Assembly: GCA_013416795.1 (NCBI GenBank)
Contig: RQSC01001262.1
Coordinates: forward strand, 1-64,000
Direction of reading: 5' to 3'
Source: Prasinococcaceae sp. CCMP 1430
Lineage: Eukaryota; Plantae; Prasinodermophyta
DNA length: 64,000 nt
Shown here piece by piece: positions 8,267 to 47,862 of this stretch. The notes under the pieces were generated by a model. The model did not search any database and was not told where the DNA came from. It saw nothing but the letters and a program-made list of their open reading frames with translations. Both the position numbers and the translations under genes were made by a program. The number at the start of each line of letters is the position of its first letter. The stretch's first letter is position 1.

Positions 8267-8479
8267 GACGAGGCGTGCGCGTCGGCCGGTGCGCGACGCA
8301 GTGCCAGTCCCCCCGTCCTGTGCTACCGCGCGGAGATCGATACGCGCACGCGCACGTGCCGAGCCGCTGGCGCGGGGTCCCGGCGGTCAGTCGCCGCGTG
8401 CGTGTCGCGCAGTTGAGGGGGGCGGCGCGGGCAACCTTCATAGATAGGGTTAACCGGGTTTATAGAGGAAGTCTCCTGT

Positions 8480-8552
8480 GGTGGGTATAGCTCAGTGGTT
8501 AGAGCGTCTGTTTGTGGTATAGAAAGCGCGGGTTCGATTCCCGCTATCCGCC
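8480..8552 (+). tRNA. trnH: tRNA-His(GUG)
   Basis: Cloverleaf, loop ttGTGgt, G-1 present. Confidence 0.9.
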
Positions 8553-8565
8553 CTTCCTTCAAGGT

Positions 8566-8636
8566 GGTCGTGTGGTCCAGGGGTAAGACAGGAGCCTGCA
8601 AAGCTCTTAACGGCGGTTCGACTCCGCCCACGGCCT
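8566..8636 (+). tRNA. trnC: tRNA-Cys(GCA)
   Basis: Cloverleaf, loop ctGCAaa. Confidence 0.9.
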
Positions 8637-8839
8637 TTCTTTCGATCACCCAAACCCTCTTTCAGAAAATCCTGGTGGTCGAGAGAAAGGGTCTTCTAAA
8701 AAAAAAACATACTTGACCGCCTTTTCGGAAGCCCTTTTTTCTTGGAAAAGGTTTTTGTTTTTTCTTTCTGACAAGGAAACCCTTCGTCTGACCAACAAAG
8801 AAAATCCTTCATCTTTGTTTTTCCTTTGTTTTTTTGTTT

Positions 8840-9469
8840 ATGCCATCTACTCTTCCAATCGCTGGATTCGACCGACTTCTTTCAAAACTTTCTCCTAAGG
8901 CAGCCCAAGAACTTGCGGGTGGACCTGGTCTTACCCTTGCCTATGCTCTTCCAACCTCAGTGGACGGAATCCTTCTTCAGGATACCCACCTTCAGATTCA
9001 CCTTCGACCAAGTCAGTTGAAGGTTGTTCTTCGGTACCTTCGAGATGAGGAAAGTCTTCAGTACACAACGTTGACTGCGATAAACGTGGTTGATCGACCA
9101 ACTGCAGCCCTCCGGTTTGGTGTGGTCTACCAACTCCTTTCCTATACCTTGGAACACCGCCTTCAAGTGATCTGTCTTGTGAATGACCATGAGTCTCTTC
9201 CGAGTGTGGTTGATTTGTATCCGAGTGCCCAATGGTCCGAGTGTGAGAACTGGGATATGTTTGGAATCCATACCTTGGATCACCCAAACCTGTATCGCCT
9301 TCTCACAGACTATGGGTTTGAGGGCCATCCCTTGCGAAAGGATTACCCTCTCTCTGGGTTTACTGAGGTTCGATACGACGAAGACCTTCAACAAGTTGTG
9401 AGCACTCCTGTCGAACTCGCTCAGGAATATCGAGTCTTTGATTATGCTTCTCCTTGGAAAACCTTTTGA
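8840..9469 (+). CDS. nad9: NADH dehydrogenase subunit 9, copy 1
   Basis: WSECENWDMFGI and RLLTDYGFEGHPLRKDYPLSG motifs. Confidence 0.95.
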   Translation: MPSTLPIAGFDRLLSKLSPKAAQELAGGPGLTLAYALPTSVDGILLQDTHLQIHLRPSQLKVVLRYLRDEESLQYTTLTAINVVDRPTAALRFGVVYQLLSYTLEHRLQVICLVNDHESLPSVVDLYPSAQWSECENWDMFGIHTLDHPNLYRLLTDYGFEGHPLRKDYPLSGFTEVRYDEDLQQVVSTPVELAQEYRVFDYASPWKTF

Positions 9470-9622
9470 AAGAGAGAACCCTTCCTGAAAACAACCTTCT
9501 CAAAAAGAATTCTTGTATGGTTTTTTCCAAAAAAAAGACACATACTTGAAAATACGCGAAAGGATAGATATACTTGACTGTATGGGAAAGGATGAACATA
9601 CTTGAGAATAAGCGAAAGGGGT

Positions 9623-9711
9623 GGAAAAGTGGCTGAGTGGACGATAGCGCTGGTTTGCTAAATCAGTATACCGAGTCTTCGGTATCATGGGTTCGAATCC
9701 CATCTTTTCCG
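9623..9711 (+). tRNA. trnS: tRNA-Ser(GCU)
   Basis: Cloverleaf with long variable arm, loop ttGCTaa. Confidence 0.9.
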
Positions 9712-9738
9712 GCACCCTTTCTCTTTGACAGAGAAGGC

Positions 9739-9811
9739 GGGGGTATAACTCAGTTGGTAGAGTGTTTGCTTTGCACGCAAGAAGCCATCGGTTCGAATCC
9801 GGTTATCTCCA
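9739..9811 (+). tRNA. trnA: tRNA-Ala(UGC)
   Basis: Cloverleaf, loop ttTGCac. Confidence 0.9.
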
Positions 9812-9909
9812 CTTTGGTTTCTCGGAACCGAAGGGTTTGTTTCTGAGAGACTTTTTTCAACCAAGACCTTCTTTCTCAGGGTGTACACAGGTGAGCGTCT
9901 GCGAAAAAG

Positions 9910-9981
9910 GCCCTTATGGCTCAGTGGTAGAGCGCACCCATGGTAAGGGTGAGGCCCCGAGTTCGATCCTCGGTAAGGGCT
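9910..9981 (+). tRNA. trnT: tRNA-Thr(GGU)
   Basis: Cloverleaf, stem caccc/gggtg, loop atGGTaa. Confidence 0.85.
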
Positions 9982-10141
9982 CCCCCTTCTTGAAATCTTT
10001 TCTTGGGTTCAAAGGTGGATCAAAAAAGTCTTTTCTTTTAAAGACAGGGTGACTGACCTTTTCTTTGGTTTCTAAGAACCGAAAAAGACACAGACTTGAG
10101 GGTCTGCGCGAAGGATGGACATACTTGAGCGTCTGCGAAAA

Positions 10142-10214
10142 GGGTGCTTAGCTCAGTTGGTAGAGTGTGTCCCTTACAAGGATACTGTCAGCGGTTCGAG
10201 TCCGTTAGCACCTA
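10142..10214 (+). tRNA. trnV: tRNA-Val(UAC)
   Basis: Cloverleaf, loop ctTACaa. Confidence 0.9.
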
Positions 10215-10384
10215 CAAAAAACCTTCTTTCTCGGGAAAAAAGAAAAAAGACAGATTTTTGACCCTCTGGGAAAGGATGGGTATACTTGAGGGTCTGCGAG
10301 AAGGGTATCCATCCTTGAGCGTTTGCGAGAAGGGAAGAAGGTGAAAGAGTCTTCCCTTTTGTTTTTTCCTCTCTCCTTTTTTTT

Positions 10385-10775
10385 CATCTTTTTTATGGAT
10401 TTTGGTTCTGTTTTTGTTCTTCTCTTGATTGCCGCTGTTCTTGCCCTTGCTATTCTTGCTGCCTCCCTTCTTGTGGGTCAACCTCGACGAGCAGACATTG
10501 ATACCGAAGCTGCCTATGAGTGTGGGTTCGAGCCCTTTGATGATGCTCGAGGCCGGTTTGATATTAAGTTTTACTTGGTCGCCATTCTTTTCATTATCTT
10601 TGATTTGGAGGTTTCCTTCCTTTTCCCTTGGGCTCTTTCTCTCAGTCACACAGGAATCTTTGGGTTTTATGTGATGATGGTCTTTCTCGGTGTGCTGACC
10701 GTGGGATTCGTCTACGAGTGGACCAAAGGTGCCCTTGATTGGTGAAGATTCTTTTTCCTTTCTTTTTTTGCTCGG
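10385..10775. repeat. inverted repeat arm A2, 391 bp, pairs with 25175-25565
   Basis: Ends aligned by hand, same offset (sum 35950) as arm A1. Confidence 0.95.
10395..10745 (+). CDS. nad3: NADH dehydrogenase subunit 3, copy 1
   Basis: [37 protein letters not shown]. Confidence 0.95.
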
Positions 10776-10846
10776 GAGACGTACTTCAGTGGTAGAAGGC
10801 CCGCCTGTCACGCGGGAGGCCGCCGGTTCGAATCCGGTCGTTTCCG
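10775..10846 (+). tRNA. trnD: tRNA-Asp(GUC)
   Basis: Cloverleaf, loop ctGTCac. Confidence 0.9.
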
Positions 10847-10878
10847 GATGCTATAAAAAATAGAATAAAATCAAAGAA

Positions 10879-11382
10879 TCACTTCTTTTTTCCTTTTGAT
10901 TTTTTGGACCCATTTGACTTTCCACTCAGGCTCTGGGCTGCGGTTTGAAAGTAAAGACTTTCAGGAAAGGTCTGTACCCCTGCGTCTGACCCGTAGGCCC
11001 CAGAAACTGCAATCGATGCTTGAAGAGGAGCTTGTCCTGCTTGTTCGAAAATTTCCTTTTGGAAAGCCTTTTTCCAAACCGCATCAATGTCAACAATTTG
11101 AAGCTGGAAGGTGTCAAAAGCGGTTGCCAAAGCATGAACAGACTTTTGTGCATGATCCGTATGGGCTTCAAGGCTTTGTGTAAAGGTATTCATGCTGGTA
11201 AGGTCTGAACCAAGGGATTCAACTTCCAAAAGAGAAGAATCAACCTCTTGGGCAGCTCGAGTTTTCAAAAGAGTTCCAGTTGTTGGAAGAAGAGAGTGGA
11301 CAGAAAATACGTAGTAGGTTCCTACCACAAGGGTAAGCCACATAAATTGGGCAGCGTACGACACAAGATCGAGTTGAGGCAT
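10879..11382 (-). CDS. atp8: ATP synthase subunit 8
   Basis: Diagnostic MPQLD N-terminus followed by one hydrophobic helix. Confidence 0.85.
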   Translation of the reverse strand: MPQLDLVSYAAQFMWLTLVVGTYYVFSVHSLLPTTGTLLKTRAAQEVDSSLLEVESLGSDLTSMNTFTQSLEAHTDHAQKSVHALATAFDTFQLQIVDIDAVWKKAFQKEIFEQAGQAPLQASIAVSGAYGSDAGVQTFPESLYFQTAAQSLSGKSNGSKKSKGKKK

Positions 11383-11518
11383 AAGAAAAACAAAGAAAAG
11401 GGAGAAAAAACACACAAGGGGTAAAACCAGGACCCTCTTGGTCTCTGCCTTCTCGAAAGGAAAGAAGGCGCCCTCCAACGAAGCCCATACACACGGTTTT
11501 CTTGGGCCGAAGGGTGTG

Positions 11519-11601
11519 TGAGAAGAGTAGGATTCGAACCTACGAAGACTTTCGTCCGCGGATTTACAATCAGCTCCAATTGACCACTCTGGCACCTTCT
11601 C
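11519..11601 (-). tRNA. trnY: tRNA-Tyr(GUA)
   Basis: Cloverleaf with variable arm, loop ttGTAaa. Confidence 0.85.
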
Positions 11602-11624
11602 GGGTGGGAAAAAAGAAAACCTTC

Positions 11625-11930
11625 TCAATCTCGCAAAAGGTTCATGTACTCTCCTCCAATAGTTCCCATCAATCGATAGTACACCACAAGGATTGCAAGG
11701 CCAATCGCTGATTCTGCGGCAGCGACAGTCAAGACAAAGAAAGCAAAGACTTGACCTTCGACGTCATGAAGAAGGGAAGAAAGAGAAAGGAGTTGCAAAT
11801 TGACTGCAAGAAGGATCAATTCAAGACAGAGAAGAACCAAAAGAATGGACTTTCGATTGAAAACAACCCCCATAACACCGATAACAAAAAAACAAAGGGC
11901 AAGGTTCAATGCAAAAACCGGATGAAGCAT
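11625..11930 (-). CDS. nad4L: NADH dehydrogenase subunit 4L
   Basis: LLCLELILLAVN and LTVAAAESAIGLAILV motifs. Confidence 0.95.
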   Translation of the reverse strand: MLHPVFALNLALCFFVIGVMGVVFNRKSILLVLLCLELILLAVNLQLLSLSSLLHDVEGQVFAFFVLTVAAAESAIGLAILVVYYRLMGTIGGEYMNLLRD

Positions 11931-11958
11931 AGAAGAAAAAAATGGAAAAAGAAAGAAA

Positions 11959-12612
11959 TCAGACCAACGGAGAGGGTCCAGTGTACGCAGCCCAATCCAT
12001 ATACACACAAAGGCCCTCGACACTTGGGACGAGAAGGCCCAGCAAAAGAAGGCGAAAACACCAGGTCAATCCTTCTCGCAAAGGACGTTGTTGAATACTC
12101 ATATAATCCAAAGCGATTCCTGTGAAGGATTGTTCCAAATGAAGGGCCAAAAGAGGGTAGACCAAAAGAAAGAGCATTCCAACCAAAGGGCCAAACTTGA
12201 ATCCAACAAGCCAATACAGTCCAAAAAAGAGAACCATCAAGGTCCACCCAACAAGGCCTGTCTTCGCTTGGGTATGCATCCGATCAATTTGGCGGATTTC
12301 CCCTGGGTGGGTTGAGAGAGAAGAAGAAACCAACACAAGACCTTGGTGTGGAAGGGCCCACCAAAGAAGAAGGGCTTCAAGATAAGGAACAACCAGGGTT
12401 GGATCAAGGGTTTTGGGTTGGGCAAGAAAAAACATGTACAGGTTGACCAAGAAAATGGGAACGCTTGAGGCAACCACCGTTCGATGCGCAAGATTCCACC
12501 ACTGGCTCCGAAGGTAGGACCCATACATAAAGAGAGGACGCCAAACACTCAGTTGAGAAGATGCAACACTCTCTCGATAGGGAAGAAAAACTGGACGTAG
12601 AAAATGAGACAT
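11959..12612 (-). CDS. sdh4: probable succinate dehydrogenase subunit 4, divergent and expanded
   Basis: WWNLAHRT and ALH...ALDY resemble SdhD motifs; directly downstream of sdh3. Confidence 0.6.
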   Translation of the reverse strand: MSHFLRPVFLPYRESVASSQLSVWRPLFMYGSYLRSQWWNLAHRTVVASSVPIFLVNLYMFFLAQPKTLDPTLVVPYLEALLLWWALPHQGLVLVSSSLSTHPGEIRQIDRMHTQAKTGLVGWTLMVLFFGLYWLVGFKFGPLVGMLFLLVYPLLALHLEQSFTGIALDYMSIQQRPLREGLTWCFRLLLLGLLVPSVEGLCVYMDWAAYTGPSPLV

Positions 12613-12634
12613 AGAAAAAAGAAAGAAAAAACCT

Positions 12635-13207
12635 TCAGTGAGACTTTCGATCAAAGGCTGGGCCAAGGTCGTCCTGAACCATACATCCAGCATAGTCTGC
12701 ATAGGCGTCTGAAAGTTCAAGAAGAAAGTCCAACCAGGTTCCAATCCCCACACCAAGACCAAAAAGAAAAAGACCAACACAGAGAATATACTGGGTTTTC
12801 CAAAAGTCTGGACTAAACTGGTAGGGAGTATTGAGGTACCAGTCCTCCATAAGAGAGTCGACCAGTGGGTGAATACAATGGTAGACACAAAGGGTCCAGA
12901 GAAGGAAAACAAAGAAAGTCCCGCATACAAGACTCCCTTGGGTTGAAAGATCAAAGGAAGAAGAAAGGGTTTGAAGACTTGTACTCTCTCGAAGACTTTC
13001 CAACCCAAAAAGAAGAGGGTTCAAAGAGGATTGAAGAACATTCGGAAGGGTCGCCCATCCAGTACTGAGAAAAAGAGGTGCCAATCCACCGTAAAGAAAG
13101 GGAAGAAGAAGAATCACTCCCGAAATACGCATGGAAATTGAAAGAACAGACCCACGTTGGGGACTGTACACAGTAAGGTGAGGAGACAAAGGTCGTTGAA
13201 GCTTCAT
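12635..13207 (-). CDS. sdh3: succinate dehydrogenase subunit 3
   Basis: RPLSPHLTVY...SISMRISG N-terminal signature. Confidence 0.9.
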   Translation of the reverse strand: MKLQRPLSPHLTVYSPQRGSVLSISMRISGVILLLPFLYGGLAPLFLSTGWATLPNVLQSSLNPLLFGLESLRESTSLQTLSSSFDLSTQGSLVCGTFFVFLLWTLCVYHCIHPLVDSLMEDWYLNTPYQFSPDFWKTQYILCVGLFLFGLGVGIGTWLDFLLELSDAYADYAGCMVQDDLGPAFDRKSH

Positions 13208-13265
13208 ACAAAGAAAAAACGAAAAAAGGCTGACCGCCTATAGGGAAAGAAAGGGTCTTCTGGGT

Positions 13266-13338
13266 TCAGAGTGACAGGACTCGAACCTGCGACCACTCGG
13301 TCCCAAACCGAGCACGCTACCAACTGCGCCACACTCTG
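13266..13338 (-). tRNA. trnP: tRNA-Pro(UGG)
   Basis: Cloverleaf, loop ttTGGga. Confidence 0.9.
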
Positions 13339-13376
13339 AAAACACATTGGTTTCCCAAGAAGGAGGTAAGACATTC

Positions 13377-13448
13377 GCGGGCATAGATCAAGGGCTAGAT
13401 TATCAGCCTTCCAAGCTGAAGATATGGGTTCGAATCCCATTGCCCGTA
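13377..13448 (+). tRNA. trnG: tRNA-Gly(UCC)
   Basis: Cloverleaf, loop ctTCCaa. Confidence 0.9.
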
Positions 13449-13535
13449 GACTCCTTTCATTTTCACACCCACTCTTCTTTCTTTTTGAGTTTCTTTAAAC
13501 ACTCAAAAAAGGTCAAAAACTGAAGAAAAAACCTT

Positions 13536-13621
13536 GCTTTCCTGGTGGAATTGGTAGACACGGTAGATTCAAACTCTGCTCCCAAGTCTTTGGGGTATCG
13601 GTTCGACTCCGATGGGAAGCA
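13536..13621 (+). tRNA. trnL: tRNA-Leu(CAA)
   Basis: Cloverleaf with variable arm, loop ttCAAac. Confidence 0.85.
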
Positions 13622-13715
13622 CTTCTCTCTCAAAAATCCTTCGATTCTTTTTTCTTGAAACCGAGTCAAAAGACTCTTTTTTTCTTTCTTTGGATCTTTA
13701 CATTTTTTTTCTTCT

Positions 13716-14666
13716 ATGACTCTTCCTTACCCTCGTTTGCGAACCCTTCGATCTCGATCTGCTCCTGTCTTCCACACAAAAAAGCTTTCTGCAAAACTTG
13801 CACGGTTGGTTGAAAGTAAGCGTCTCGGTCGCCCACAACCATCCTTTCGAAAGCTCTCTTGGTATAAAGAGCGACTTCAAGCACGTCAAAATGTTCGAGC
13901 CTTTTACGGGTGGATGCCAGCAACCTCTCTTGGTCGATTGATGAAAAAGGCCCGAGCACATCGACCAACCGCAGGGCCTACCTTTCTTCAAAGTCTTGAA
14001 CGAATGGCCTTCATGGTTGTATATCGAGCTGGGTTTGCTCCAACACCTCGAAGTGCGCGCACCCAAGTTCGTCAGGGGTGGTATACTTTGAATGGAAAGG
14101 TATTGACCGCTGCGACCCGTATGCTTGATCTTGGGGATACCCTCCTTCTTCAGTCCTCCTATCATTCTGCAGCCCACGCCCACCTTCAGTGTACAAAGTA
14201 TACACATACGACACAGTGGAAGGAGACCGAAAAGTCCGGCTTTCATACTGGGCTTCAACTCAGTCTTCTTGGAAATGGAGACGGAATGGTGGACCCTTCC
14301 TCTTTGGTGTGGCGTCTTCGAATGCTCAGTCTTCAAAAAAGTACACACCTTTCTTCCGGAAAGAAAGAAGGGTTTTCTCGTCTCCATACTGAAATTGGTC
14401 TTCATCAGACCTTTGTTTTGAAAGGAGATACAAGTCTTCTTCATGACAGCTGGGCTTCTCTCAAAAATCAGTCAAGCTTTTCTCCTCTTTGGTCAAAAAA
14501 AGATCGATCAACTGTTGAAAAAATCCTTCCAGGCCGATACCTTTCAGGCCACTTGGAAACCAATCCTCGGATTTTTGGACTGACCTTGGTAAGTCCACCA
14601 TCTCATTTGGTCTACCCAATGAAAGTAAACGAACGAACATTGGATCGACTCTATCACAGAAAGTGA
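13716..14666 (+). CDS. rps4: ribosomal protein S4 with internal insertion
   Basis: LQARQNVRAFYG; LERM...VYRAGFA...ARTQVRQG S4-domain pattern. Confidence 0.8.
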   Translation: MTLPYPRLRTLRSRSAPVFHTKKLSAKLARLVESKRLGRPQPSFRKLSWYKERLQARQNVRAFYGWMPATSLGRLMKKARAHRPTAGPTFLQSLERMAFMVVYRAGFAPTPRSARTQVRQGWYTLNGKVLTAATRMLDLGDTLLLQSSYHSAAHAHLQCTKYTHTTQWKETEKSGFHTGLQLSLLGNGDGMVDPSSLVWRLRMLSLQKSTHLSSGKKEGFSRLHTEIGLHQTFVLKGDTSLLHDSWASLKNQSSFSPLWSKKDRSTVEKILPGRYLSGHLETNPRIFGLTLVSPPSHLVYPMKVNERTLDRLYHRK

Positions 14667-14730
14667 AAGATTCTTCAGTTTTCTTTTTTCACACTTTCAA
14701 AACCATTCTTTGTCTATAAAAAAATCTTTT

Positions 14731-15543
14731 ATGTCTTTGTCTCTTCTTCATGCGAAAGAGAGTTTTTCACGATTGGGATGGGCAGGGTGCACCTTTGGAA
14801 CAAGTCTTTGGTGTGGAACCTTCTATGTGCATGACTTTGTTGACAGTCTTTTGCTCTTTCCTTCTTTGAGCGGGACTTCTTTTGGGTTTACTGCCCACGC
14901 ACCAACTGACCTTTTTGAAGTTCTTTTCCGAGTCCTTTTTTTCTCAACTTTGTGCACCTGCCTTCCAACTCTGATCTGCTTTTTTCTTGAAGCCGCTCAC
15001 CCTGGGTTGGATCAAAGTGAAACTTGGACTCTTCATTCCTTTCTTTTTTTCTTTGTTTTTGGGTTTCTTTTTCTTCTTTGGGTGGGAAAAATCCTTCTTT
15101 TGAGTACAATCTCTGGATTGGTTTTTTTGTATGGAGTGGACCAGAACCATCAAGACATACATACAGGTCTCCTTCCCCTTCTTCGAGGACTTGGGTGGAT
15201 CCGTTTTCTCACGCACACCCTTTCTTTGGGCTTTTTCATCTTTCTTCTTTGTGTGTGTCTTCCCTTTCTTTTGAAAAAAACAGGATACACAGTGATTGAT
15301 GGAAAGAGTCTTCGAAAACTTTGGGCACTTGGAACCCTTGGATGTTTGAGTTTGGCTCTCCCAACCCCAGACGTTTTTCTCGGTCTTTTGGGAATCTGGA
15401 TAGGCTTTCTCTTTCTCTTTGAAATCAGTCTGGGTTTTCTTTTGTACACACAGATCCGTCAGACTGTCCGAAAGACTTTCTCTTTCCAAGAAAGTAGTTT
15501 ATTTATATATTTTTTATATAAGTGGGTTTCTTCTTTCGGATGA
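14731..15543 (+). CDS. tatC: probable TatC/MttB translocase subunit
   Basis: Multi-pass hydrophobic ORF with P.D.F and PGL..E TatC-like motifs; gene common in green-algal mtDNA. Confidence 0.65.
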   Translation: MSLSLLHAKESFSRLGWAGCTFGTSLWCGTFYVHDFVDSLLLFPSLSGTSFGFTAHAPTDLFEVLFRVLFFSTLCTCLPTLICFFLEAAHPGLDQSETWTLHSFLFFFVFGFLFLLWVGKILLLSTISGLVFLYGVDQNHQDIHTGLLPLLRGLGWIRFLTHTLSLGFFIFLLCVCLPFLLKKTGYTVIDGKSLRKLWALGTLGCLSLALPTPDVFLGLLGIWIGFLFLFEISLGFLLYTQIRQTVRKTFSFQESSLFIYFLYKWVSSFG

Positions 15544-15619
15544 AGAGGGATTCGAACCCCCGATACTTCCGTATGTCAGTTTTCAAAACTGATGCCTTCG
15601 ACCACTCGGCCATTCATCC
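15537..15619 (-). tRNA. trnS: tRNA-Ser(UGA)
   Basis: Cloverleaf with variable arm, loop ttTGAaa. Confidence 0.9.
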
Positions 15620-15628
15620 AAATCAAGG

Positions 15629-15700
15629 TGGGTTCAGTAGGACTCGAACCTACGGCCTGTCGGTTAAAAGCCGATTGCTCTCCCACTGAGCTATGAACCC
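15629..15700 (-). tRNA. trnK: tRNA-Lys(UUU)
   Basis: Cloverleaf, loop ctTTTaa. Confidence 0.9.
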
Positions 15701-15775
15701 TCAATAAGAGTACAATCTTTCTTTGAAGAAAGGATGGTTTTGCTTGTATGTGTACAAAAAAGAAGGAAGAAAAAC

Positions 15776-15857: not shown

Positions 15858-15909
15858 ATCCGGAAACTCCGGTGTCTTTGTACAAAGACAGATCCATCTT
15901 CTGAAGAAA

Positions 15910-16140
<231 letters not shown>

Positions 16141-37945: not shown

Positions 37946-37980
37946 TCACCTTCACCCTAGACCACCCACAGATTTTTTGT

Positions 37981-39690: not shown

Positions 39691-40434
39691 TCAGATATCT
39701 TCCATCTTTACTCGAAGCCAGTCAACGTACTGAGGCATGGTGACAGACTCCACAGCAATCGGCATAAACCCATGGTTCATTCCACAAATTTCACTACACT
39801 GTCCATAGAAAAGACCGACTCGATCCATGTACAGAGAAACTTGGTTCAGTCGTCCAGGAACAGCATCACACTTCAATGCAAGACTTGGAACAGCCCAGCA
39901 ATGAAGAACGTCTGCACTTGTAATAAGGACGCGAACGTGTGAGTGAACAGGAAGAACAACCCGGTTATCAACCTCAAGCAATCGAAGATCACCTGGAAGA
40001 AGGTCGTCCTCTGCAATCATATACGAATCATATACAATTGAAGTCTCGTTATCCTGAGCATAATCTGAATACTCATAGGTCCAATACCATTGGTGACCAA
40101 CAACTTTCAAAGTAATTGCCGGGTCAACCACCTCATCCATTGAGTAAAGCAATGCAAAAGAAGGCATTGCAATCAACATAAGAATAAGACTTGGGGTCAC
40201 GGTCCAAATAATTTCAAGTTCTGTTCCGTGGGTGGTTGAATCCGCACCGATACTTGTCCCTTTTACGAAGTGCATAAGACATCGAACCATAAGGAAACAA
40301 ACCATAACCACAATTGCGATCAAGAAAAACATAATATCGTGGTGAAGATCATAGATCCCAGCCATTGCTGGAGATGCAGGATCCTGAAACCCATATTGCC
40401 ATGGGATAGCGTGATCAGCGTACACAGTGAACAT
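39691..40434 (-). CDS. cox2: cytochrome c oxidase subunit 2
   Basis: [10 protein letters not shown]; DVLHCW; [15 protein letters not shown] CuA motif. Confidence 0.98.
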
Positions 40435-40646
40435 CAAAAATCGAAAGAAAAAAGAAAGGAAGGTTCCTTTCTGCAAGAAAGAAAAAGAAAAAAGGGTGAC
40501 GGAAGGAAAGATTTTTTGATCGAAGGCTTCCCTATGGAGGGACACACCCTTTAGTTTCAGAAAGAAAAAATCTACTTTTGTGGTCTCTTCCTTTGACACA
40601 AAGAAAGAATGTCCCTTCAAAAAGGAAAAACTCTCTCTCTTTCCTA

Positions 40647-40719
40647 TGATCGACACAGGATTCGAACCTGTGACACCAAGAGCTTCAATCTTGTGCTCTA
40701 CCAACTGAGCTAGTCGATC
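40647..40719 (-). tRNA. trnF: tRNA-Phe(GAA)
   Basis: Cloverleaf, loop ttGAAgc. Confidence 0.88.
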
Positions 40720-40778
40720 CTAAAAAAGAAATCAAAGGGTTTTTGAAGGAAAAAAGGAGGGTTTTCTACGAAAAAACC

Positions 40779-40851
40779 CGACCAAACTGGGATTCGAACC
40801 CAGAACTCCCGCATTAACAGTGCGACGTTCTACCAAATGAACTTTTTGGTC
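40779..40851 (-). tRNA. trnN: tRNA-Asn(GUU)
   Basis: Cloverleaf, loop ctGTTaa. Confidence 0.88.
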
Positions 40852-40960
40852 GTTCTCCAAAAGGGCGGTTAACCTTGAAAAGTCTTCACATACGAAAACT
40901 TTTTCGAAAGAAGAGGAAGAAAACCCTTCGTTTCTGGCAAACAAAGAAAACCAAACCTTC

Positions 40961-42589
40961 TCATCGAAGAACAAGGGAAAGGGCAACATATTTAGCCCCA
41001 GTCAAGAAAGCTTGTGGCCAAAGACCAAACCCAAGAATAAGAAGGGTCATTCCGCCAATCAACCCTGCTTGATAGTCATCAGGGGTTTCCCATTCATGAA
41101 CATCTGTGGGCTGGCCTTCAAAATACATAATACTTACAAGTCGAAGATAATAGAACGTTGAAACAACGGAAGTAAGAAGACCCAAAAGAGCAATCCCATA
41201 GGCGTGGGCTTCAACGGCTGCCATAAGAACAAGAGCCTTTGAAGCAAATCCAGCAAGTGGGGGAATCCCAGCCATGCTAAGAACGCCAACACTGAGGCAG
41301 AAGGCCATCATTGGGTGGGTGTGTCCTAGGCCTTGAAGCTCATGCAATCGAAGAATCCGTCGGCTTTCTCCTGCACTTCGAAGAGAAAGAAGGATTCCGA
41401 ACACCAAGAGAGACATACAAATATACAGACTCATGTACACAAGGGTTGCTGTATACCCGCTTTCTCCAACACAAGAAAGTGAGAGAAGAATCCATCCCAC
41501 ATGTCCAATTGAAGAATAGGCAAAAACCCGCTTCAACTTTGTTTGGGCAAGAGCTCCCCAGGCTCCCACAAGAAAGGAAAGACCAGCACATCCTCCGAAG
41601 AGAATACCCCAGGCTTCATACACGGAAGCTGGTGAAAGACTGAGGATTCGAAGAACCAAACTAAAGAGTGCCATCTTTGGTCCCACCGCAAAGAAGGCTG
41701 TCACTGGTGTTGGTGCACCTTCATACACATCAGGAACCCAAATATGGAAGGGAGCAGCTCCCACTTTAAACATAAGACCGACCCCAAGACAAAGAAGTCC
41801 CATAAGAAGAGGAGTATCAAGAGTGGTCGATTCTGACGCTTGAAGAAAAAGGGAAATATCATCCAATTTTGTAAACCCGGTCAATCCATACAGAAGACTT
41901 GCCCCAAAAAGGAAGATAGCAGATGCAAGGGCTCCAAGAACAAAGTATTTCAACCCAGCTTCAACAGAAAGCACACTCTGACGTTTTGAAGCTGCAAGAA
42001 CATAGAGACACATTGATTGAAACTCAATGCAAAGGTACACCATCAAAAGGTCATTTGCTTGGACAAGAAGAATCATACTCAGTCCCGCGTACAAAATAAG
42101 AGCGTTAATTTCGTACGGAGGAAGGCGATCCAAAAAATGTGTATGGTAGGATCCCGCAAGAAGGATGGTTGCAAGGGTCGCACAAAGCAAAAGAACACTG
42201 AGGTAGGAAGCCAAAGGATCCAAACAAAGCCCTTTATTAAAAATCTCTCGATCGATCCCATCCACTCCATTCATATAAAGAGTGGCAGTCAAAAGAAGAG
42301 TGAACCCTCCAAGCAATCCATAAGGACCGCTCAAAGCCGGATACTTGTAGGATTGCGTGGTTGCAATCCATACAGCCCACATGAGAAGGAAAAGCCCCAT
42401 AAGACTTAGATAGGTCTCTGGAAGGAAGTAGACCCAATCATAGTGAAAGAAAGATTCGGGATGGTCGTACCCGTGCAATCCTGGAAGACTGTGTGTTTCA
42501 GCTTGGGCGCGGGCAATTGCCAAATCTTCGGTCGGGCTCGGAAGAAAGGGGGAGAAAAATGCCAATGGTTGAGAAGAAGGGGAGTGCAT
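40961..42589 (-). CDS. nad2: NADH dehydrogenase subunit 2; start uncertain
   Basis: EAGLKYFVLGALAS; FKVGAAPFHIWVPDVYEG; SMAGIPPLAGF. Confidence 0.95.
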   Translation of the reverse strand: MHSPSSQPLAFFSPFLPSPTEDLAIARAQAETHSLPGLHGYDHPESFFHYDWVYFLPETYLSLMGLFLLMWAVWIATTQSYKYPALSGPYGLLGGFTLLLTATLYMNGVDGIDREIFNKGLCLDPLASYLSVLLLCATLATILLAGSYHTHFLDRLPPYEINALILYAGLSMILLVQANDLLMVYLCIEFQSMCLYVLAASKRQSVLSVEAGLKYFVLGALASAIFLFGASLLYGLTGFTKLDDISLFLQASESTTLDTPLLMGLLCLGVGLMFKVGAAPFHIWVPDVYEGAPTPVTAFFAVGPKMALFSLVLRILSLSPASVYEAWGILFGGCAGLSFLVGAWGALAQTKLKRVFAYSSIGHVGWILLSLSCVGESGYTATLVYMSLYICMSLLVFGILLSLRSAGESRRILRLHELQGLGHTHPMMAFCLSVGVLSMAGIPPLAGFASKALVLMAAVEAHAYGIALLGLLTSVVSTFYYLRLVSIMYFEGQPTDVHEWETPDDYQAGLIGGMTLLILGFGLWPQAFLTGAKYVALSLVLR

Positions 42590-42698
42590 AATCAACAGAA
42601 AGGGTCCACGAAACCCAGGAAAAGAAAAAAAGCCAACAGACCCTGTGTGCCTGTTTTGAAAGTCATTCTTCGGAAGAGAGTTTTTCTTCAAAACTCTC

Positions 42699-44153
42699 TC
42701 AGAGAAGGTGAGCCATCAGATGGGCCAGACTTGCATGCATAGGATTCAAAAGTGCATCTGGATAAATTCCAAAGAAAACAGCCCCACTCAAAAGAGGAAG
42801 GAGAAGAGCAAGTTCCCGCCGATTGACATCCGCATGTGCTTTGAGTGCCCAAGGCTTTGGGAGTCCAAAAATAATTCGGTTACACACCCAGAGTTGGTAT
42901 GCACCACCAAGGATCATTCCAAGAGCACCTCCAAAGGCAAGAACCGAGCTTACACTGAAACACCCGCAGAGCACCAAAAACTCTCCGACAAAGGAAACTG
43001 TTCCTGGGAGACCAATGTTTGCCATAGAAAGAAAGACAAAGATTGCTCCAAAAAGAGGCATTGTAAGGACGAGACCTCCGTAGTAGTGTACCAATCGAGT
43101 CTTATATCGGTCATACAAGGCTCCAATCATCACAAAAAGGGCAGAACTGACAAATCCGTGTCCCAACATGAGGAAAAGAGCTCCTTCAACCCCTGTCTGA
43201 GTCAAACTAAAGATTCCAAGAGTGACAACCCCCATGTGTGCAACCGAGGAATAGGCAATGATTTTCTTCAAGTCAATTTGTCGGATGGTTGTCAAGGAAG
43301 TATACACAATAGCAGCCAAACTCAGGGTACAGACCAAGGGACTGAAGTACACACAGGCGTCTGGCAAAAGGGGAAGAGAGAGTCGAAGGAATCCGTACCC
43401 TCCGAGCTTCAGCATAATTCCAGCAAGAAAGACAGACCCTCCAGTCGGTGCCTCAACGTGGGCCTCGGGCAACCACACATGCATAGGGACCATAGGAATC
43501 TTGACTCCAAAGGCAACAAAAAAGGCCAACCATACAAGAAGCTGGCGTTCAAAGGAGAGTTCACAATTCGCAAGAACAGTAAGGTCGGTTGTTCCCGCCT
43601 CAGTTGCCAGAAGAACAAGGGCAAGAAGCATAAGGACAGACCCAGCCAAGGTGTACAGGAAAAACATGTAGGCTGCTTGAATCTTTCGAGATCGAGATCC
43701 CCAAACCCCGATAATCACATACATTGGAATAAGGACAGCCTCGAAAAAGATATAAAACATCAAAAGATCCAAACTCAGAAAGACTCCCAGAGTAAGGCTT
43801 TCCAAAACAAGGAAAGCAATGAAATAGTCTTTCACACCATAATTCAACGTCCATCCTGCAAGAAGGCAAAGAGGAACCAAAAGGGTGGTCAAAAGAACCA
43901 AAAAGATTGAGATTCCATCGATCCCAAGAATAAAGTTGATCCCGTATTCTTGGAGGTAAGGAAAGGTGGTCACCATTTGGTACTTCGGGGTCGCACTATT
44001 AAATTGGGTGTACACTCCAAGGGAAGCAACCAAGGTTGCACAGGACGCGCTAAGGCCAACAATTTTTTGGGTTTCCACACGGTCTGCGGGAAGAAGGAGG
44101 ATGAGTCCTACACCGAGAAGGGGAAGAAAAAGCAAGACTGGTAGAAGAAACAT
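42699..44153 (-). CDS. nad4: NADH dehydrogenase subunit 4
   Basis: KIPMVPMHVWLPEAHVEAP; KKIIAYSSVAHM. Confidence 0.97.
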   Translation of the reverse strand: MFLLPVLLFLPLLGVGLILLLPADRVETQKIVGLSASCATLVASLGVYTQFNSATPKYQMVTTFPYLQEYGINFILGIDGISIFLVLLTTLLVPLCLLAGWTLNYGVKDYFIAFLVLESLTLGVFLSLDLLMFYIFFEAVLIPMYVIIGVWGSRSRKIQAAYMFFLYTLAGSVLMLLALVLLATEAGTTDLTVLANCELSFERQLLVWLAFFVAFGVKIPMVPMHVWLPEAHVEAPTGGSVFLAGIMLKLGGYGFLRLSLPLLPDACVYFSPLVCTLSLAAIVYTSLTTIRQIDLKKIIAYSSVAHMGVVTLGIFSLTQTGVEGALFLMLGHGFVSSALFVMIGALYDRYKTRLVHYYGGLVLTMPLFGAIFVFLSMANIGLPGTVSFVGEFLVLCGCFSVSSVLAFGGALGMILGGAYQLWVCNRIIFGLPKPWALKAHADVNRRELALLLPLLSGAVFFGIYPDALLNPMHASLAHLMAHLL

Positions 44154-44233
44154 ACAAGAAAGCAAAAAGGAAAGGGTTTCTCAGTGCACCAAAAAAGGTT
44201 TGTTTTTCAAAGAAACCAAAAAAAAAAGAGAAC

Positions 44234-46255
44234 TCAGACTGCAAGTCCAAGAAGACTGATTCCTGCCAACAAAAGAGCAAAACCTTCGTCTGGACCGAAT
44301 CCAAGAGAAAGAACCCCTGAAGCTGGTCCAAGAAGACTCAGAAGAAGAAGAATCAGACAAAAGGCAAGAACAGATGCGTAATGTGGAAGACTTGTCCAGG
44401 ATCGAAGTCGAAGCACTGGAAGAAGAGACCCTGCACTAAACTTTGCACCCGTTGGACCAAAGACTTCAAGAAGACCTTTATCAATGGTCTTGAAGGTCAC
44501 GTGGTATCCGAAGAAAAGAGCAGTCCACCCGAAGACTTCAGCATAAATTTTATCAATAAACCATCGCTTGTTTGTGAAAATATAAAAAGTCCGAACACTC
44601 TGACTTCGAGTAAGGGCTGCCAGTGCCATCTTTCGAAGGGGACCAAGGTGTACAAGGTAGGCCAAGGTTGCGCCAAGGGTGGTTGCAATCAAAGGTGCAA
44701 CCTTCGCTGAAAGCGGAACAAGCTCAGCCTCGAACCCTTGGGTCAGCCCTCCAGCAGCAACCAGAGACCCTCCCCAAAAGGGAGTCCCCAACCCAGTGAA
44801 GGCTTCTTTCAATCCTTCTGCTCCAAAAATCGAACAGGTTGTAAGAACCAACAAAGGAATAAGAATAGTCCAGGATCCTTCATGGGCAAGAAGAATACCA
44901 GCCTTTGAAGTTCGACTCTCTCCCCAGAAAACCATAAAGAGAAGGCGAAAGGAATAGTACGAAGTACAGAAGGCTGCAAAAATTCCAAGAAGGTAGGCCA
45001 GAAGTCCGGTTGCCATCCCACGGGAATAGGCAGCTTCAAGAACAAGGTCCTTTGAATAAAAGGCTCCAAGGTAAGGAAATCCAACCAAAGCGAGACTTCC
45101 AACAACCATACATGCGTAGGTAAGAGGAAGGAGACGGGCGAGTCCTCCCATCTTTCGCATATCTTGTTCTCCTCCAATCGCATGAATCACAGATCCAGCA
45201 CAAAGGAAAAGAAGGGCTTTAAAGAAAGCGTGAATGATCATGTGATAGAGAGCAACCGCGTACGCACCAACTCCTGCTGCAAACACCATATATCCCAGCT
45301 GACTACAGGTTGAGTAGGCAATCACTCGCTTCATATCATTCTGGGTCAGCCCAGTCACGGCTCCAAGAAGGGCGGTGGTTGCCCCTACAACGGTGGCAAC
45401 CTGAAGGGCGATCGGTGCATACGCAAGAAGAGGGCTGACTCGTGCCAAAAGAAAGACCCCAGCAGTAACCATGGTCGCAGCGTGAATCAAGGCTGAAACA
45501 GGGGTCGGTCCTTCCATCGCATCAGGAAGCCAGGTGTGAAGGCCAACCTGTGCGGACTTTCCAATCGCACCAATAAAAAGAAGGCAGCCAATCGCTGTCA
45601 ACGCATGAACCTCGTACCCAAAAAAGATAAGAAGGTCTTCTGCATGAAGGTGTGCAGTGCTGAAAACAGTGGCATAGTCCAAAGACTTGAAAAGGGCATA
45701 AATCCCAAAAATTCCAAGGGCCAAACCAACGTCTCCAACTCGGTTCATAATCATTGCTTTAATCGAAGCCTTATTTGCTTGTGCCCGAGTAAACCAAAAG
45801 TTGATAAGAAGGTAGGATGCAAGACCAACACCTTCCCATCCAAGGAAAAGAATAAGAAAGTTATCCCCTGTGACCAAAAGCATCATAAAGATAGTAAAGG
45901 TCGACAAGTAGGTCATGAAACGTGGAAGGTGGGGATCCGCACTCATATACCCAATAGAATACAAATGAACCAAGCTTGAAACCCCAGTAATCATGCAAAG
46001 CATAACCATTGTAAGGGTGTCAAAAAGGAAGCCCCATTGTGCATCAAAGGCCTCGGAGTGGACCCATCGCCCAAGAGTCAGTGTACAAGGGGACCCACCA
46101 TATCCGACCTCGTACAAACCGATAAAACTGAGAAGAGCAGAAAGGGCGACCGCAGTCGTGGTGAGAAGAGCTGTTCCTCGACCTCCCATGGCTCGTCCAA
46201 AGAAGCAGCCAAAAAGAGTTCCAAGAGTGGGAAGCAAGAGAAGAACCAGATACAT
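44234..46255 (-). CDS. nad5: NADH dehydrogenase subunit 5
   Basis: KSAQVGLHTWLPDAMEGPTPVSALIHAATMVTAG. Confidence 0.97.
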   Translation of the reverse strand: MYLVLLLLPTLGTLFGCFFGRAMGGRGTALLTTTAVALSALLSFIGLYEVGYGGSPCTLTLGRWVHSEAFDAQWGFLFDTLTMVMLCMITGVSSLVHLYSIGYMSADPHLPRFMTYLSTFTIFMMLLVTGDNFLILFLGWEGVGLASYLLINFWFTRAQANKASIKAMIMNRVGDVGLALGIFGIYALFKSLDYATVFSTAHLHAEDLLIFFGYEVHALTAIGCLLFIGAIGKSAQVGLHTWLPDAMEGPTPVSALIHAATMVTAGVFLLARVSPLLAYAPIALQVATVVGATTALLGAVTGLTQNDMKRVIAYSTCSQLGYMVFAAGVGAYAVALYHMIIHAFFKALLFLCAGSVIHAIGGEQDMRKMGGLARLLPLTYACMVVGSLALVGFPYLGAFYSKDLVLEAAYSRGMATGLLAYLLGIFAAFCTSYYSFRLLFMVFWGESRTSKAGILLAHEGSWTILIPLLVLTTCSIFGAEGLKEAFTGLGTPFWGGSLVAAGGLTQGFEAELVPLSAKVAPLIATTLGATLAYLVHLGPLRKMALAALTRSQSVRTFYIFTNKRWFIDKIYAEVFGWTALFFGYHVTFKTIDKGLLEVFGPTGAKFSAGSLLPVLRLRSWTSLPHYASVLAFCLILLLLSLLGPASGVLSLGFGPDEGFALLLAGISLLGLAV

Positions 46256-46344
46256 AGTGAAAAAAAAAATGGTCTCCAAACCATGGTTGGTTTGATTGTG
46301 TGCCACCCTCCAAAAAATCTGTGGGTGGTCTAGGGTGAAGGTGA

Positions 46345-46417
46345 GAGCAGCACCTGGATTCGAACCAGGACACTCGAGGTCATGAGCCTCGCAGCCTTCC
46401 AATTGGCCCATGCTGCC
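46345..46417 (-). tRNA. trnM: tRNA-Met(CAU), copy 2
   Basis: Reverse complement of 37873-37945. Confidence 0.85.
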
Positions 46418-46503
46418 GTGTCTCAGTCTTTGAAAGAAACCCTCTCTTTCTTTGACCGTATGGGAAAAAAGACACATATTTGACCATATGGGAAAAGAAA
46501 GGT

Positions 46504-47496
46504 TTACATTGGAAGAGCGTTCAATCCAAGAAGAAGACCACTCAACATACAGACCCATCCAAGGGAAAGAGGGAGGAAGACCTTCCACCCAAGGGCCATA
46601 AGTTGGTCATATCGGTATCGAGGAAGACTGGCTCGAACCCAAATATACCCAAGAAGAAGGAAGAGGGTTTTGACTGCATACCAGAACCCTCCAGGAATCA
46701 TGGTCAAAGGAAAGACCATAAGAGGAGGGTGCCACCCACCAAGGAAGAGAAGGACAAGAAGGGCAGACATGAGAATCATGTTTGCATACTCTCCAAGAAA
46801 GAAGAGGGCAAACCCCATAGACCCGTATTCAACGTTGTACCCTGCAACCAACTCCGCCTCCGCTTCTGGAAGGTCAAAGGGTGCTCGATTCGTTTCCGCA
46901 AGACAAGAAATGAAGAAAAGAAGAGCAATAGGGAAGAGAGGGAGGACAAGCCAGACTTCCTCCTGGGCTTTCACAATAGAAGCAATTTGAAGAGACCCTG
47001 TACAGAGAAGGACGGAAATCAAAATAAGTCCAATAGAAACCTCATAGGAAACCATCTGTGCGGTCGATCGGAGGGCTCCAAGAAAGGCATACTTTGAGTT
47101 CGATGCCCACCCTGCAATAATGATTCCATACACCCCCAAAGACCCTGTTGCAAAAATATACAAAATTCCAAGATCAAGGTCCACAAGAACAGCATCCTCT
47201 GAAAGAGGAAGAGCAGCCCACCCCATCATTGCAAAAATAAAGGTAAGGACTGGGGCGGCAACAAAAAGGTGAATATCTGAAAGGGTAGGAAGGGCAGCCT
47301 CTTTCACAAGAAGCTTCAAAGCATCCGCAAGGGGCTGGAAAAGCCCCCAGAGACCAACCACATCCGGCCCCTTTCGTCGTTGCATGGCCCCCATAATCTT
47401 TCGCTCTGCAAGGGTAAGGTAGGCAACCGCAATCAACAAAGGAAGAAGAAGACCAAGAATCTGGGTAAGTTGGAAGACAAAGGTAAGAAGTGTCAT
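46504..47496 (-). CDS. nad1: NADH dehydrogenase subunit 1, copy 2
   Basis: Translation identical to copy 1. Confidence 0.97.
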
Positions 47497-47643
47497 TCAG
47501 TCAAAGAAAGAAAAAGGAGACTGGTGGAAGCTTTCTTTCTGTACAAAAGAAAAAGAAAGGGAAACACAAGAAAAAAGACTGAGTTTTTCAGAAAAAAGAG
47601 TCTGAAAAAAGAAAGACTTCCTTTCTTTCCTGCTCCCTACGGG

Positions 47644-47862
47644 ATCAATAAACCATCGCTTGTTTGTGAAAATATAAAAAGTCCGAACACTCTGACTTCG
47701 AGTAAGGGCTGCCAGTGCCATCTTTCGAAGGGGACCAAGGTGTACAAGGTAGGCCAAGGTTGCGCCAAGGGTGGTTGCAATCAAAGGTGCAACCTTCGCT
47801 GAAAGCGGAACAAGCTCAGCCTCGAACCCTTGGGTCAGCCCTCCAGCAGCAACCAGAGACCC
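47644..47862 (-). pseudogene. nad5: 219-bp internal nad5 fragment, direct repeat of 44552-44770
   Basis: Aligned by hand at constant offset 3092. Confidence 0.92.

Follow-up and report, generated by a model that had tools for sequence, protein, structure and literature searches.

The first 64,000 nt of contig RQSC01001262.1 of Prasinococcaceae sp. CCMP 1430 (assembly GCA_013416795.1), which are referred to as the window in the following, raise the question of how mitochondrial DNA (mtDNA) came to stand between two stretches of nuclear sequence. Positions 8429-47862 consist of Prasinoderma coloniale-type mtDNA with nuclear flanks on both sides. An earlier note on this DNA had offered two explanations, an insertion of mtDNA into the nuclear genome (NUMT) or a mis-join of the assembly, and had leaned towards a real repair event.

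Identity and layout of the mitochondrial block

The block is set off by a sharp change in composition, with a GC content of 0.41-0.54 inside (about 45% for the block) vs. 0.61-0.73 outside. ARAGORN finds 26 tRNA genes of 23 species, and Rfam matches comprise rns, rnl in three pieces, parts of a group I intron, and tRNAs. Among the 29-30 protein genes, Pfam confirmed nad1-6, nad4L and nad9, cox1-3, cob, atp6, atp8 and atp9, sdh3 and tatC, as well as the ribosomal protein genes rps3, rps4, rps8, rps11, rps12, rps13, rps14, rps19, rpl5, rpl14, and rpl16; rpl6 was assigned from its position only. With the exception of rpl6, the about 30 mitochondrial protein genes, the 23 tRNA species and the rRNAs that had been noticed before were recovered by ARAGORN, Rfam and Pfam, and gene set, tRNA set and split rnl identify the block as mitochondrial in origin. 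Over the 3.2 kb compared (44450-47645) it shows 0 differences to free mtDNA contigs of the same strain, and it is 97-99% identical to wild mitochondrial contigs.

The mitochondrial part represents one linearised genome, namely 39,217 colinear bases of a 48,340-bp circle that is composed of two single-copy regions of 14,399 and 8,331 bp and an inverted repeat of 12,805 bp. Relative to this circle, the block is without 9.1 kb of one inverted-repeat copy and has in addition a 219-nt patch from nad5. The linear copy begins and stops within the same inverted-repeat copy (copy B), which is present as two ends only (2,347 + 1,335 nt of 12,805). The description as a near-whole mitogenome is therefore appropriate in that the sequence is near-complete and colinear, but it is not whole. 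The outer 2,347 nt of copy B (8429-10775, forward strand) carry trnH, trnC, nad9, trnS(gcu), trnA, trnT, trnV, and nad3 (ARAGORN, Pfam), and they are the reverse complement of 25175-27521 except for a corrupted stretch of 900 nt. The large single-copy region (10776-25174, 14,399 nt) is colinear with the wild mitochondrial contigs L018-L027 at 97-99% identity and contains trnD, atp8, trnY, nad4L, sdh3, trnP/G/L, rps4, tatC, trnS/K/L, atp9, the ribosomal cluster from rps11 to rps19, and cox1. Copy A of the inverted repeat is complete (25175-37979, 12,805 nt) and has the same length as a double-depth contig of the same-strain run X16. On the basis of Rfam and Pfam matches it harbors nad3, the corrupted tRNA spacer, nad9, trnC, trnH, trnQ, rps12, rnl piece c, cob, rnl piece b, rns, rnl piece a, trnMe, atp6, trnR/I/W/E, nad1, and trnMf, with the LSU rRNA pieces at 33193-35145 (reverse strand), 30386-30881 (reverse) and 28240-28633 (forward), the SSU rRNA at 31681-33119 (reverse), and the group I intron at 30239-30472 placed by Rfam. 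The small single-copy region (37980-46310, 8,331 nt) contains nad6, cox3, cox2, trnF, trnN, nad2, nad4, and nad5 (Pfam) and corresponds to an X16 contig of 8,391 nt, which is 8,331 nt plus two overlaps of 30 nt. Finally, the inner 1,335 nt of copy B (46311-47645, reverse strand) are the 100% reverse complement of 36645-37979 and carry trnMf, nad1 and the last 15 nt of trnE, with the break inside trnE. As a by-product, the mtDNA of the strain can be reconstructed as a circle 6.2 kb below the published CCMP 1220 genome in size.

The duplicated genes had been noted to translate identically, with no nonsense lesion seen. The duplicated stretches are indeed 100% identical, apart from the 900 nt at 25566-26465, and with these the block is not free of lesions. 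Sequence comparison shows that this stretch matches 9485-10384 at 100% when the latter is merely reversed and not complemented, and at 0% when it is reverse-complemented as expected, i.e., it is the complement of the true sequence without reversal. The second copies of trnS(gcu), trnA, trnT, and trnV are destroyed by it, and neither ARAGORN nor Rfam found a tRNA within 25566-26465. The corrupted stretch is separated from nad3 by 10 nt and from nad9 by 15 nt; since it touches no ORF, it escapes notice when translations are read. No wild mitochondrial contig matches 25566-26465, and 9485-10247 is matched in the proper orientation. A complement-only copy is physically impossible and is an in silico error, and therefore this part of the record has been altered in silico. 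To our knowledge, no assembler is known to make such an error.

The nuclear flanks and the three joints

The left nuclear flank (1-8432, GC 0.62-0.73) contains a RING-finger gene (about 339-1982, forward strand), a tetrapyrrole methylase gene (2375-3466, reverse), a lysyl-tRNA synthetase gene (4873-6537, forward), and an unnamed gene on the reverse strand, the first exon of which starts at 8266. In the right nuclear flank (47863-64000, GC 0.61-0.72) there are a promoter-like stretch with telo-box-like motifs, a small two-exon gene starting at 48325 (forward), microsatellites, and a dynein heavy chain gene represented by its 3' part (51163-53892, reverse). Pfam matches to the RING protein, the methylase, the synthetase and the dynein bear out the nuclear genes that had been seen on both sides. 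A telomere or chromosome end at the right flank was considered and rejected, as only isolated TTAGGG/CCCTAA units and no array are present; these units look like promoter telo-boxes. No coding bias was found in the six frames of 47860-48270.

At the left joint (8429-8432), a 4-nt microhomology (GGGC) lies inside an imperfect match of 13/15 between nuclear and mitochondrial sequence, as judged from an alignment of the window with its own inverted-repeat copy, wild mtDNA and wild nuclear contigs. Three wild contigs match the flank up to 8432, with identities of 100% (L001, a Logan contig, over 7447-8432), 97.4% (L016) and 99.3% (L017, a Tara contig), respectively, and all of them depart from the window exactly at 8432 into one common nuclear continuation. 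L016 and L028 carry this continuation to about 8.2 kb, over which it meets no part of the window. Along it lie a 548-aa ORF, a gene with a TLC domain, a DHHC gene, and another gene of >941 aa, all of them missing from the whole 64-kb window. Walking further via the DHHC gene yielded no new contig, and the identical lysyl-tRNA synthetase protein is known only from EukProt and from ENA contigs of up to 3.9 kb. A spliced 5'UTR as the cause of the divergence of L001 at 8432 was discarded, since the would-be acceptor lacks an AG and the window offers no upstream exon. The wild sequence past 8432 thus does not show the contiguous flanks that the empty site of a NUMT would have. A direct joining of 8428 to 47863, which the earlier note had regarded as decisive against an insertion, was not seen either. 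The two flanks do not meet over at least 8.2 kb, and therefore a join of two unrelated nuclear regions fits better than a simple insertion. Moreover, a query spanning the joint scores 0.99, and never 1.00, in each of the 18 runs that contain the left flank; as the non-nuclear words of this query are only about 3 sampled joint words, these scores count against the left joint in a suggestive way only.

While the evidence at the left joint comes from wild contigs, contigs of the same-strain runs were compared at the right side. Here, the patch (47644-47862, forward strand) turned out to be a direct copy of 44552-44770 inside nad5, 3.1 kb away, which bears out the patched right junction of the earlier note, and its two joints have microhomologies of 2 nt (AT) and 3 nt (CCC). 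No contig bridges 47645/6 or 47862/3 in the same-strain runs X1, X4, X16, and X19, the nuclear and mitochondrial contigs of which otherwise match the window with 0 differences. Inverted-repeat contigs cross 47645 unbranched in X1 (2,552 nt), X16 (12,805 nt), and X19 (6,855 nt), and their loose end beyond this position (TCGAACCCGTG...) is normal inverted-repeat sequence. A 425-nt nuclear contig of X4 and X16 covers 47860-48268 and, beyond its end at 47860, has 13-14 letters that are unlike the patch. Among wild contigs, L002 matches 48278-50765 at 94.7%, and a homology search with the first gene of the right flank led to only one contig, which begins some 90 nt before 48278 and does not extend as far as the joint. 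Exact 26-mers from each flank near the joints had no matches in JGI metagenome contigs, and joint-spanning ORFs are absent from the protein collection, an absence that carries no weight since culture runs apparently have no gene calls there. Spanning support, on which the junctions were to be judged according to the earlier note, is therefore missing at 47645/6 and 47862/3 in four same-strain runs, and at the left side the wild flank continues elsewhere. Joints that are unsupported by independent reads, together with non-syntenic flanks, are what is expected of an assembly chimera.

Read depth and origin of the block

A nuclear copy in addition to at least one free mtDNA per cell predicts a single-copy mitochondrial/nuclear depth ratio of at least 2 and an inverted-repeat/single-copy ratio below 2. 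The former is about 1 in X1, X16, and X19, and the latter is 2.0-2.2. In X1, contig depth is 395-482 for single-copy mtDNA vs. 281-604 for nuclear contigs, with 1,064 (2.2x) for the inverted repeat, and in X16 it is 39.2 vs. about 38, with 79.4 (2.03x). In X4, mitochondrial depth is only 2.5-5.4 vs. a nuclear depth of 92-155 (ratio 0.03). By this rough measure, in which contig depth is not copy number and Logan contigs show presence better than absence, the depth differs from that of free mtDNA plus one nuclear copy and cannot accommodate a nuclear copy in X1, X4, X16, and X19. Depth inside the block, which had been suggested as a check, is not raised above the level that results from free mtDNA alone.

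It is probable that the block is a chimeric contig, in which ordinary mtDNA is threaded between two nuclear regions that are not neighbours, and that there is no heritable insertion. One or two chimeric long molecules may have joined nuclear DNA to mtDNA through template switching or annealing primed by microhomology, and could have arisen either rarely in a few cells or in library preparation. The assembler would then have walked from a nuclear contig end along the mitochondrial path into the other nuclear contig, and polishing with the abundant organelle reads would have made the block identical to the organelle. The 900-nt tile could have been corrupted by a half-finished reverse-complement step at a place where the contig holds its own inverted duplicate.

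Three observations speak against a chimeric contig and in favour of a real event, namely microhomology at all three joints (4, 2, and 3 nt, respectively), the 219-nt filler, and the divergent-promoter site. In simulations, a random join gives at least 4 nt of microhomology in 1.4% of the cases, and the joint probability of the three microhomologies for random joins is about 1e-4, which argues for an end-joining or template-switching signature on real molecules. Together with the filler, this is the end-joining signature expected of a NUMT. Blunt ligation chimeras or in silico pasting would not yield such microhomology, and filler DNA like the 219-nt patch is typical of real NUMT junctions. Furthermore, two divergent genes, starting at 8266 (reverse strand) and 48325 (forward), face the block with their 5' ends, and divergent promoter regions are favoured sites for real insertions. 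The earlier leaning towards a repair event is thus justified insofar as patch and microhomologies are real and repair- or template-switch-like, but the unsupported joints, the depth and the flanks point away from it.

The same three observations also speak for a nuclear capture private to the clone, although we consider it unlikely that this happened. In the sub-line used for the assembly, linearised mtDNA of 39.2 kb, broken in one inverted-repeat copy, would have entered chromosome breaks through microhomology-mediated end joining or template switching, including the 219-nt templated filler, and too recently for any change to accumulate. In line with this, the fragment comes from one circle as a single colinear stretch, and the partner is specifically mtDNA, though mtDNA makes up only about 0.2% of the DNA by depth. 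However, the capture would bridge breakpoints at least 8.2 kb apart, which implies a large deletion or translocation, and thus needs the loss or relocation of at least 8.2 kb with at least four genes in a presumed haploid alga. Moreover, an insert of 39 kb without any divergence is a priori improbable in a genome as compact as 25 Mb, the joints are found neither in the contigs of the four same-strain runs nor, probably, in any of the 18 runs with the left flank, depth leaves no room for the insert in the four runs, and the block holds a software-made error. Another explanation is a concatenation purely in silico by a scaffolder, a gap-filler or manual editing, with no physical joining molecule. 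The complement-only 900 nt prove that the record was altered by software or by hand, the joints are unsupported in any read set examined, and the flanks are not neighbours in wild relatives. Nevertheless, such an origin seems very improbable, as the joints are free of N gaps, the inverted repeat is broken internally and not at contig-like repeat boundaries, and microhomology at three joints (about 1e-4) plus a 219-nt filler is unlike arbitrary pasting. An established NUMT fixed in the species or strain, for which only the place of the block between nuclear sequences speaks, has practically no probability left and is refuted by the absence of its joints from three wild contigs and the same-strain runs, in addition to zero divergence from free mtDNA over 44450-47645 and 100% identical internal repeats.

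If the insertion were real, the nucleus of this very compact green alga would have taken up a near-whole mitogenome during the life of a culture, and the rate and mechanism of DNA transfer from organelle to nucleus could be observed directly. For the present, and with a chimeric contig as the preferred reading, the locus is mainly a warning that the assembly joins mtDNA to nuclear DNA without support from public same-strain reads. Because of such joins and the complement-only error, gene models, synteny and NUMT counts here and at similar places of the assembly need read checks before they can be trusted. In the literature searched, including the supplement of the genome paper, nothing was found on NUMTs or on the mitochondrial genome size of the strain.

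Comparison with known systems

The mitochondrial genome of P. coloniale strain CCMP 1220 (KF387569) has 54,546 bp and a 14,364-bp repeat (Pombert et al., 2013; PMC3873408). The block shares with it the same 23 tRNA species including trnL(caa), trnR(ucg), and trnT(ggu), the presence of sdh3, the lack of atp1, nad7 and rps2, and a G+C content of about 45%. Common clusters are nad5-nad4-nad2, cox2-cox3, nad1-trnMf, trnS-trnA-trnT, and rps11-to-rps19. In both, a large inverted repeat holds rns and rnl, the three-piece trans-spliced rnl has rns between pieces a and b, and piece c lies on the other strand between cob and rps12. Split-rnl layout, large inverted repeat and gene repertoire hence assign the block to the P. 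coloniale type. In contrast to CCMP 1220, the circle has 48,340 bp and the repeat 12,805 bp (from the window and the X16 contigs), and the window has one inverted-repeat copy shortened and 900 nt corrupted.

Large recent NUMTs are known, such as the roughly 620-kb mtDNA insertion on chromosome 2 of Arabidopsis and near-full-length ones in some human genomes. The block resembles them in that near-full-length organelle DNA stands between nuclear sequences, with microhomology and filler at the joints. However, known NUMTs have spanning reads, nuclear-level depth and an identifiable empty site, whereas here no read set examined has the joints, the depth of an extra copy is lacking, and the flanks are not neighbours. 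Compared to blunt library chimeras, the joints show more microhomology. The block is like organelle-nuclear chimeric long-read contigs in that its organelle part does not differ from the free genome, independent short reads give no support to the joints, and non-syntenic nuclear regions are linked.

Anatomy of the mitochondrial block

The mitochondrial block (8429-47862) lies between two nuclear flanks and stands out by a sharp change in composition, with a G+C content of 0.62-0.73 up to ~8.4 kb, 0.41-0.54 to ~47.9 kb, and 0.61-0.72 beyond. ARAGORN detects 26 tRNA genes of 23 species in the block, and Rfam a bacterial-type SSU rRNA (31681-33119, minus strand), LSU rRNA pieces at 33193-35145 and 30386-30881 (both minus strand) and at 28240-28633 (plus strand), and a group I intron match (30239-30472). 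Pfam confirms the respiratory genes nad1, 2, 3, 4, 4L, 5, 6, and 9, cox1-3, cob, atp6, 8, and 9, and sdh3, as well as tatC, rps3, 4, 8, 11, 12, 13, 14, and 19, and rpl5, 14, and 16; rpl6 is called by position only. An ORF between rps19 and cox1 (22860-23327, minus strand) matches the Pfam family of ribosomal protein S10 weakly, at 19.3 bits (E 0.0014), which is below the cutoff of 21.2; rps10 is listed as absent from Prasinoderma mtDNA (PMC3873408). The flanks carry ordinary nuclear genes, encoding a lysyl-tRNA synthetase, a tetrapyrrole methylase, a RING protein, and a dynein heavy chain. Composition, gene content, and flank genes together therefore bear out the earlier note, which had seen mitochondrial DNA inside nuclear sequence.

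Exact-repeat analysis revealed that 8429-9484, 10385-10775, and 36645-37979 are the reverse complements of 26466-27521, 25175-25565, and 46311-47645, respectively, and that 44552-44770 recurs as a direct repeat at 47644-47862. The block thus reads as the outer end of inverted-repeat copy B (8429-10775, 2,347 nt), the large single-copy region (10776-25174, 14,399 nt), the complete inverted-repeat copy A (25175-37979, 12,805 nt), the small single-copy region (37980-46310, 8,331 nt), the inner end of copy B (46311-47645, 1,335 nt), and a patch copied from within nad5 (47644-47862, 219 nt). In X16, one of the public read runs compared with the window as assembled Logan contigs, a contig at double depth measures exactly 12,805 nt, and one at single depth 8,391 nt, equal to 8,331 nt plus two 30-nt overlaps. 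The mtDNA of the strain therefore reconstructs as a 48,340-bp circle with an inverted repeat of 12,805 bp and single-copy regions of 14,399 and 8,331 bp, and the block represents this circle once, in linear form: 39,217 bases are colinear with it, and 9,123 nt are missing from the middle of one inverted-repeat copy. Gene order is the same in contigs from marine metagenomes (L006-L027, 97-99% identical), in which each end of the repeat occurs in both of its junction contexts: nad1 is followed by nad5 or nad6 (L006 versus L007-L010), and nad3 by atp8 or cox1 (L018/L020 versus L019/L021). The species occurs widely in Tara Oceans data (97-99% identity), with 220 collection blocks listing nad1 and 207 listing nad3.

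A complemented stretch and the junction signatures

The earlier note had reported no nonsense lesion in the block. However, a stretch of exactly 900 nt (25566-26465) matches 9485-10384 at 100% when that segment is simply reversed, but at 0% when it is reverse-complemented; the stretch is the true inverted-repeat sequence complemented in place. As such a stretch is impossible in any DNA molecule, it must be an error of software or handling, be it a reverse complement left half done by a program or an edit. None of the wild mitochondrial contigs matches it, though they match its surroundings and, in proper orientation, 9485-10247. Since its edges lie 10 nt outside nad3 and 15 nt outside nad9, the error destroyed no more than the second copies of trnS(gcu), trnA, trnT, and trnV and touched no ORF, so that it escaped the first reading; a random 900-nt stretch would miss all ORFs in this way in ~6/10,000 placements.

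At the left joint (8429-8432), the nuclear sequence (GGGCGGCGCGGGC, then GGCC) and the mitochondrial sequence (GGGCGGTCGCTGGGC, then AACC) have GGGC in common, inside a 13/15 match. AT is common to both sides of the switch from inverted repeat to patch, and CCC to both sides of that from patch to nuclear DNA. Simulated random joins of the same sequences gave at least 4 nt in 1.4%, at least 2 nt in 16.7%, and at least 3 nt in 4.6% of cases, jointly ~1e-4. The 219-nt filler was copied from 3.1 kb away, and the block is sited between the 5' ends of two divergent genes. Microhomology combined with such a filler is characteristic of end joining, or of a polymerase switching templates, on physical molecules, and is not expected from blunt ligation or in-silico pasting.

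The joints and flanks in other sequence data

On the left side, the Logan contig L001, reached via the ORF of the gene starting at 8266 (minus strand), is 100% identical to 7447-8432. Its cluster relatives L016 and the Tara contig L017 are 97.4 and 99.3% identical to the left flank, respectively. All three depart from the window at exactly 8432 into one common GC-rich nuclear continuation, which reaches ~8.2 kb via L016 and the overlapping Tara contig L028 and carries a 548-aa ORF, a TLC-domain gene, a DHHC gene, and a gene of >941 aa. This continuation has no match anywhere in the 64-kb window, even by sensitive search, and the right flank therefore does not follow the left flank in genomes without the block. 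Judged from these contigs, a simple insertion at 8432 is excluded, which leaves either an insertion accompanied by a translocation or by loss of at least 8.2 kb, or the joining of two nuclear regions unrelated to each other. In all runs, the contigs end at a tract of >50 A in the left flank (220-272).

All 18 public runs that contain the left flank share 0.99 of its sampled words and none shares 1.00, as expected if every run lacked exactly the ~3 joint words among those sampled, although this is suggestive only. For the right side (44450-50400), contigs of four runs (X1, X4, X16, X19) were aligned. Zero differences from the window were seen in the mitochondrial contigs and in most nuclear contigs of these runs, which are therefore from the same strain. 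No contig in any of the four bridges 47645/6 or 47862/3, bearing in mind that Logan contigs may lose rare variants. The inverted-repeat contigs of X1, X16, and X19 cross the 47645 breakpoint unbranched into normal inverted-repeat sequence, and a 425-nt nuclear contig (X4, X16) extends to 47860 and then continues with 13-14 letters unlike the patch.

The data sets disagree with one another on the right flank (47863-49103). X1 has no contig on 47863-48225, yet full depth on 48392-49103; in X4 and X16 the 425-nt contig covers 47860-48268 with three mismatches (X16 also has one extra G after 48164), and 48430-49026 is at just 0-10% of normal depth. This locus may be structurally variable among sub-lines, or partly repeated. 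Telomere-like units (GTTAGGGT, AAACCCTTAA, TTAACCCTAACCCC, and TTTAGGG twice) occur isolated in intergenic DNA upstream of genes (47905-47955; also 3553-3575). A chromosome end was rejected there, as the units form no array and therefore look like telo-box promoter motifs. The contigs of all runs also end at 50730-51024, where long (TG/CA)n-type microsatellite arrays form imperfect inverted repeats.

A nuclear copy besides at least one free mtDNA per cell should put single-copy mitochondrial depth at 2 or more times nuclear depth, and the inverted repeat at less than 2 times the single-copy depth. Neither was observed in depths that are rough, being one figure per contig: for mitochondrial single-copy, inverted-repeat, and nuclear contigs, respectively, these are 395-482, 1,064, and 281-604 in X1, 39, 79, and ~38 in X16, and ~6, 12, and 3.5-6 in X19. 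In X4 all mitochondrial contigs have 2.5-5.4 against 92-155 for nuclear ones (no inverted-repeat value), which rules out a nuclear copy outright. Single-copy mitochondrial depth is about that of nuclear DNA in three data sets and 3% of it in the fourth, which points to cells with very few mtDNA copies in this picoalga, or to losses while the DNA was prepared.

Origin of the block and its known relatives

The earlier note had held that the patched right end favours a real repair event. Patch and microhomology are indeed real and argue that chimeric molecules existed; that these were the strain's chromosome is argued against by four same-strain read sets without the joints and without extra depth, by flanks that are not neighbours, and by the in-silico corruption of the record. 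We therefore consider it probable that the block is a chimeric contig. Nuclear-mtDNA chimeric molecules, rare or library-made, would have arisen and allowed the assembler to route the organelle sequence from one nuclear contig end to another; organelle reads used in polishing would then have removed every difference from the block, and an incomplete reverse complement may have damaged one tile. A real capture of mtDNA private to the sequenced clone, with a large rearrangement, would account for the microhomology, the filler, and the site between divergent 5' ends, but it has to face the same four objections and is rather unlikely. Pure in-silico pasting of mtDNA between nuclear contigs is very improbable, given the joint microhomology and filler. 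A fixed NUMT is refuted. The block resembles a NUMT in sequence origin and junction signature, but not in spanning reads, depth, and empty site, the three that make a NUMT real. Most likely, the block is thus not a real genome feature.

The sequence of the block itself belongs to the published mitochondrial genome type of Prasinoderma coloniale (PMC3873408), with which it shares the gene set, the gene clusters, the peculiar trans-spliced rnl in three pieces, and the tRNA species, trnL(caa), trnR(ucg), and trnT(ggu) among them. The mtDNA of P. coloniale CCMP 1220 is 6.2 kb larger (54,546 versus 48,340 bp), and its inverted repeat measures 14,364 bp compared to 12,805 bp here.
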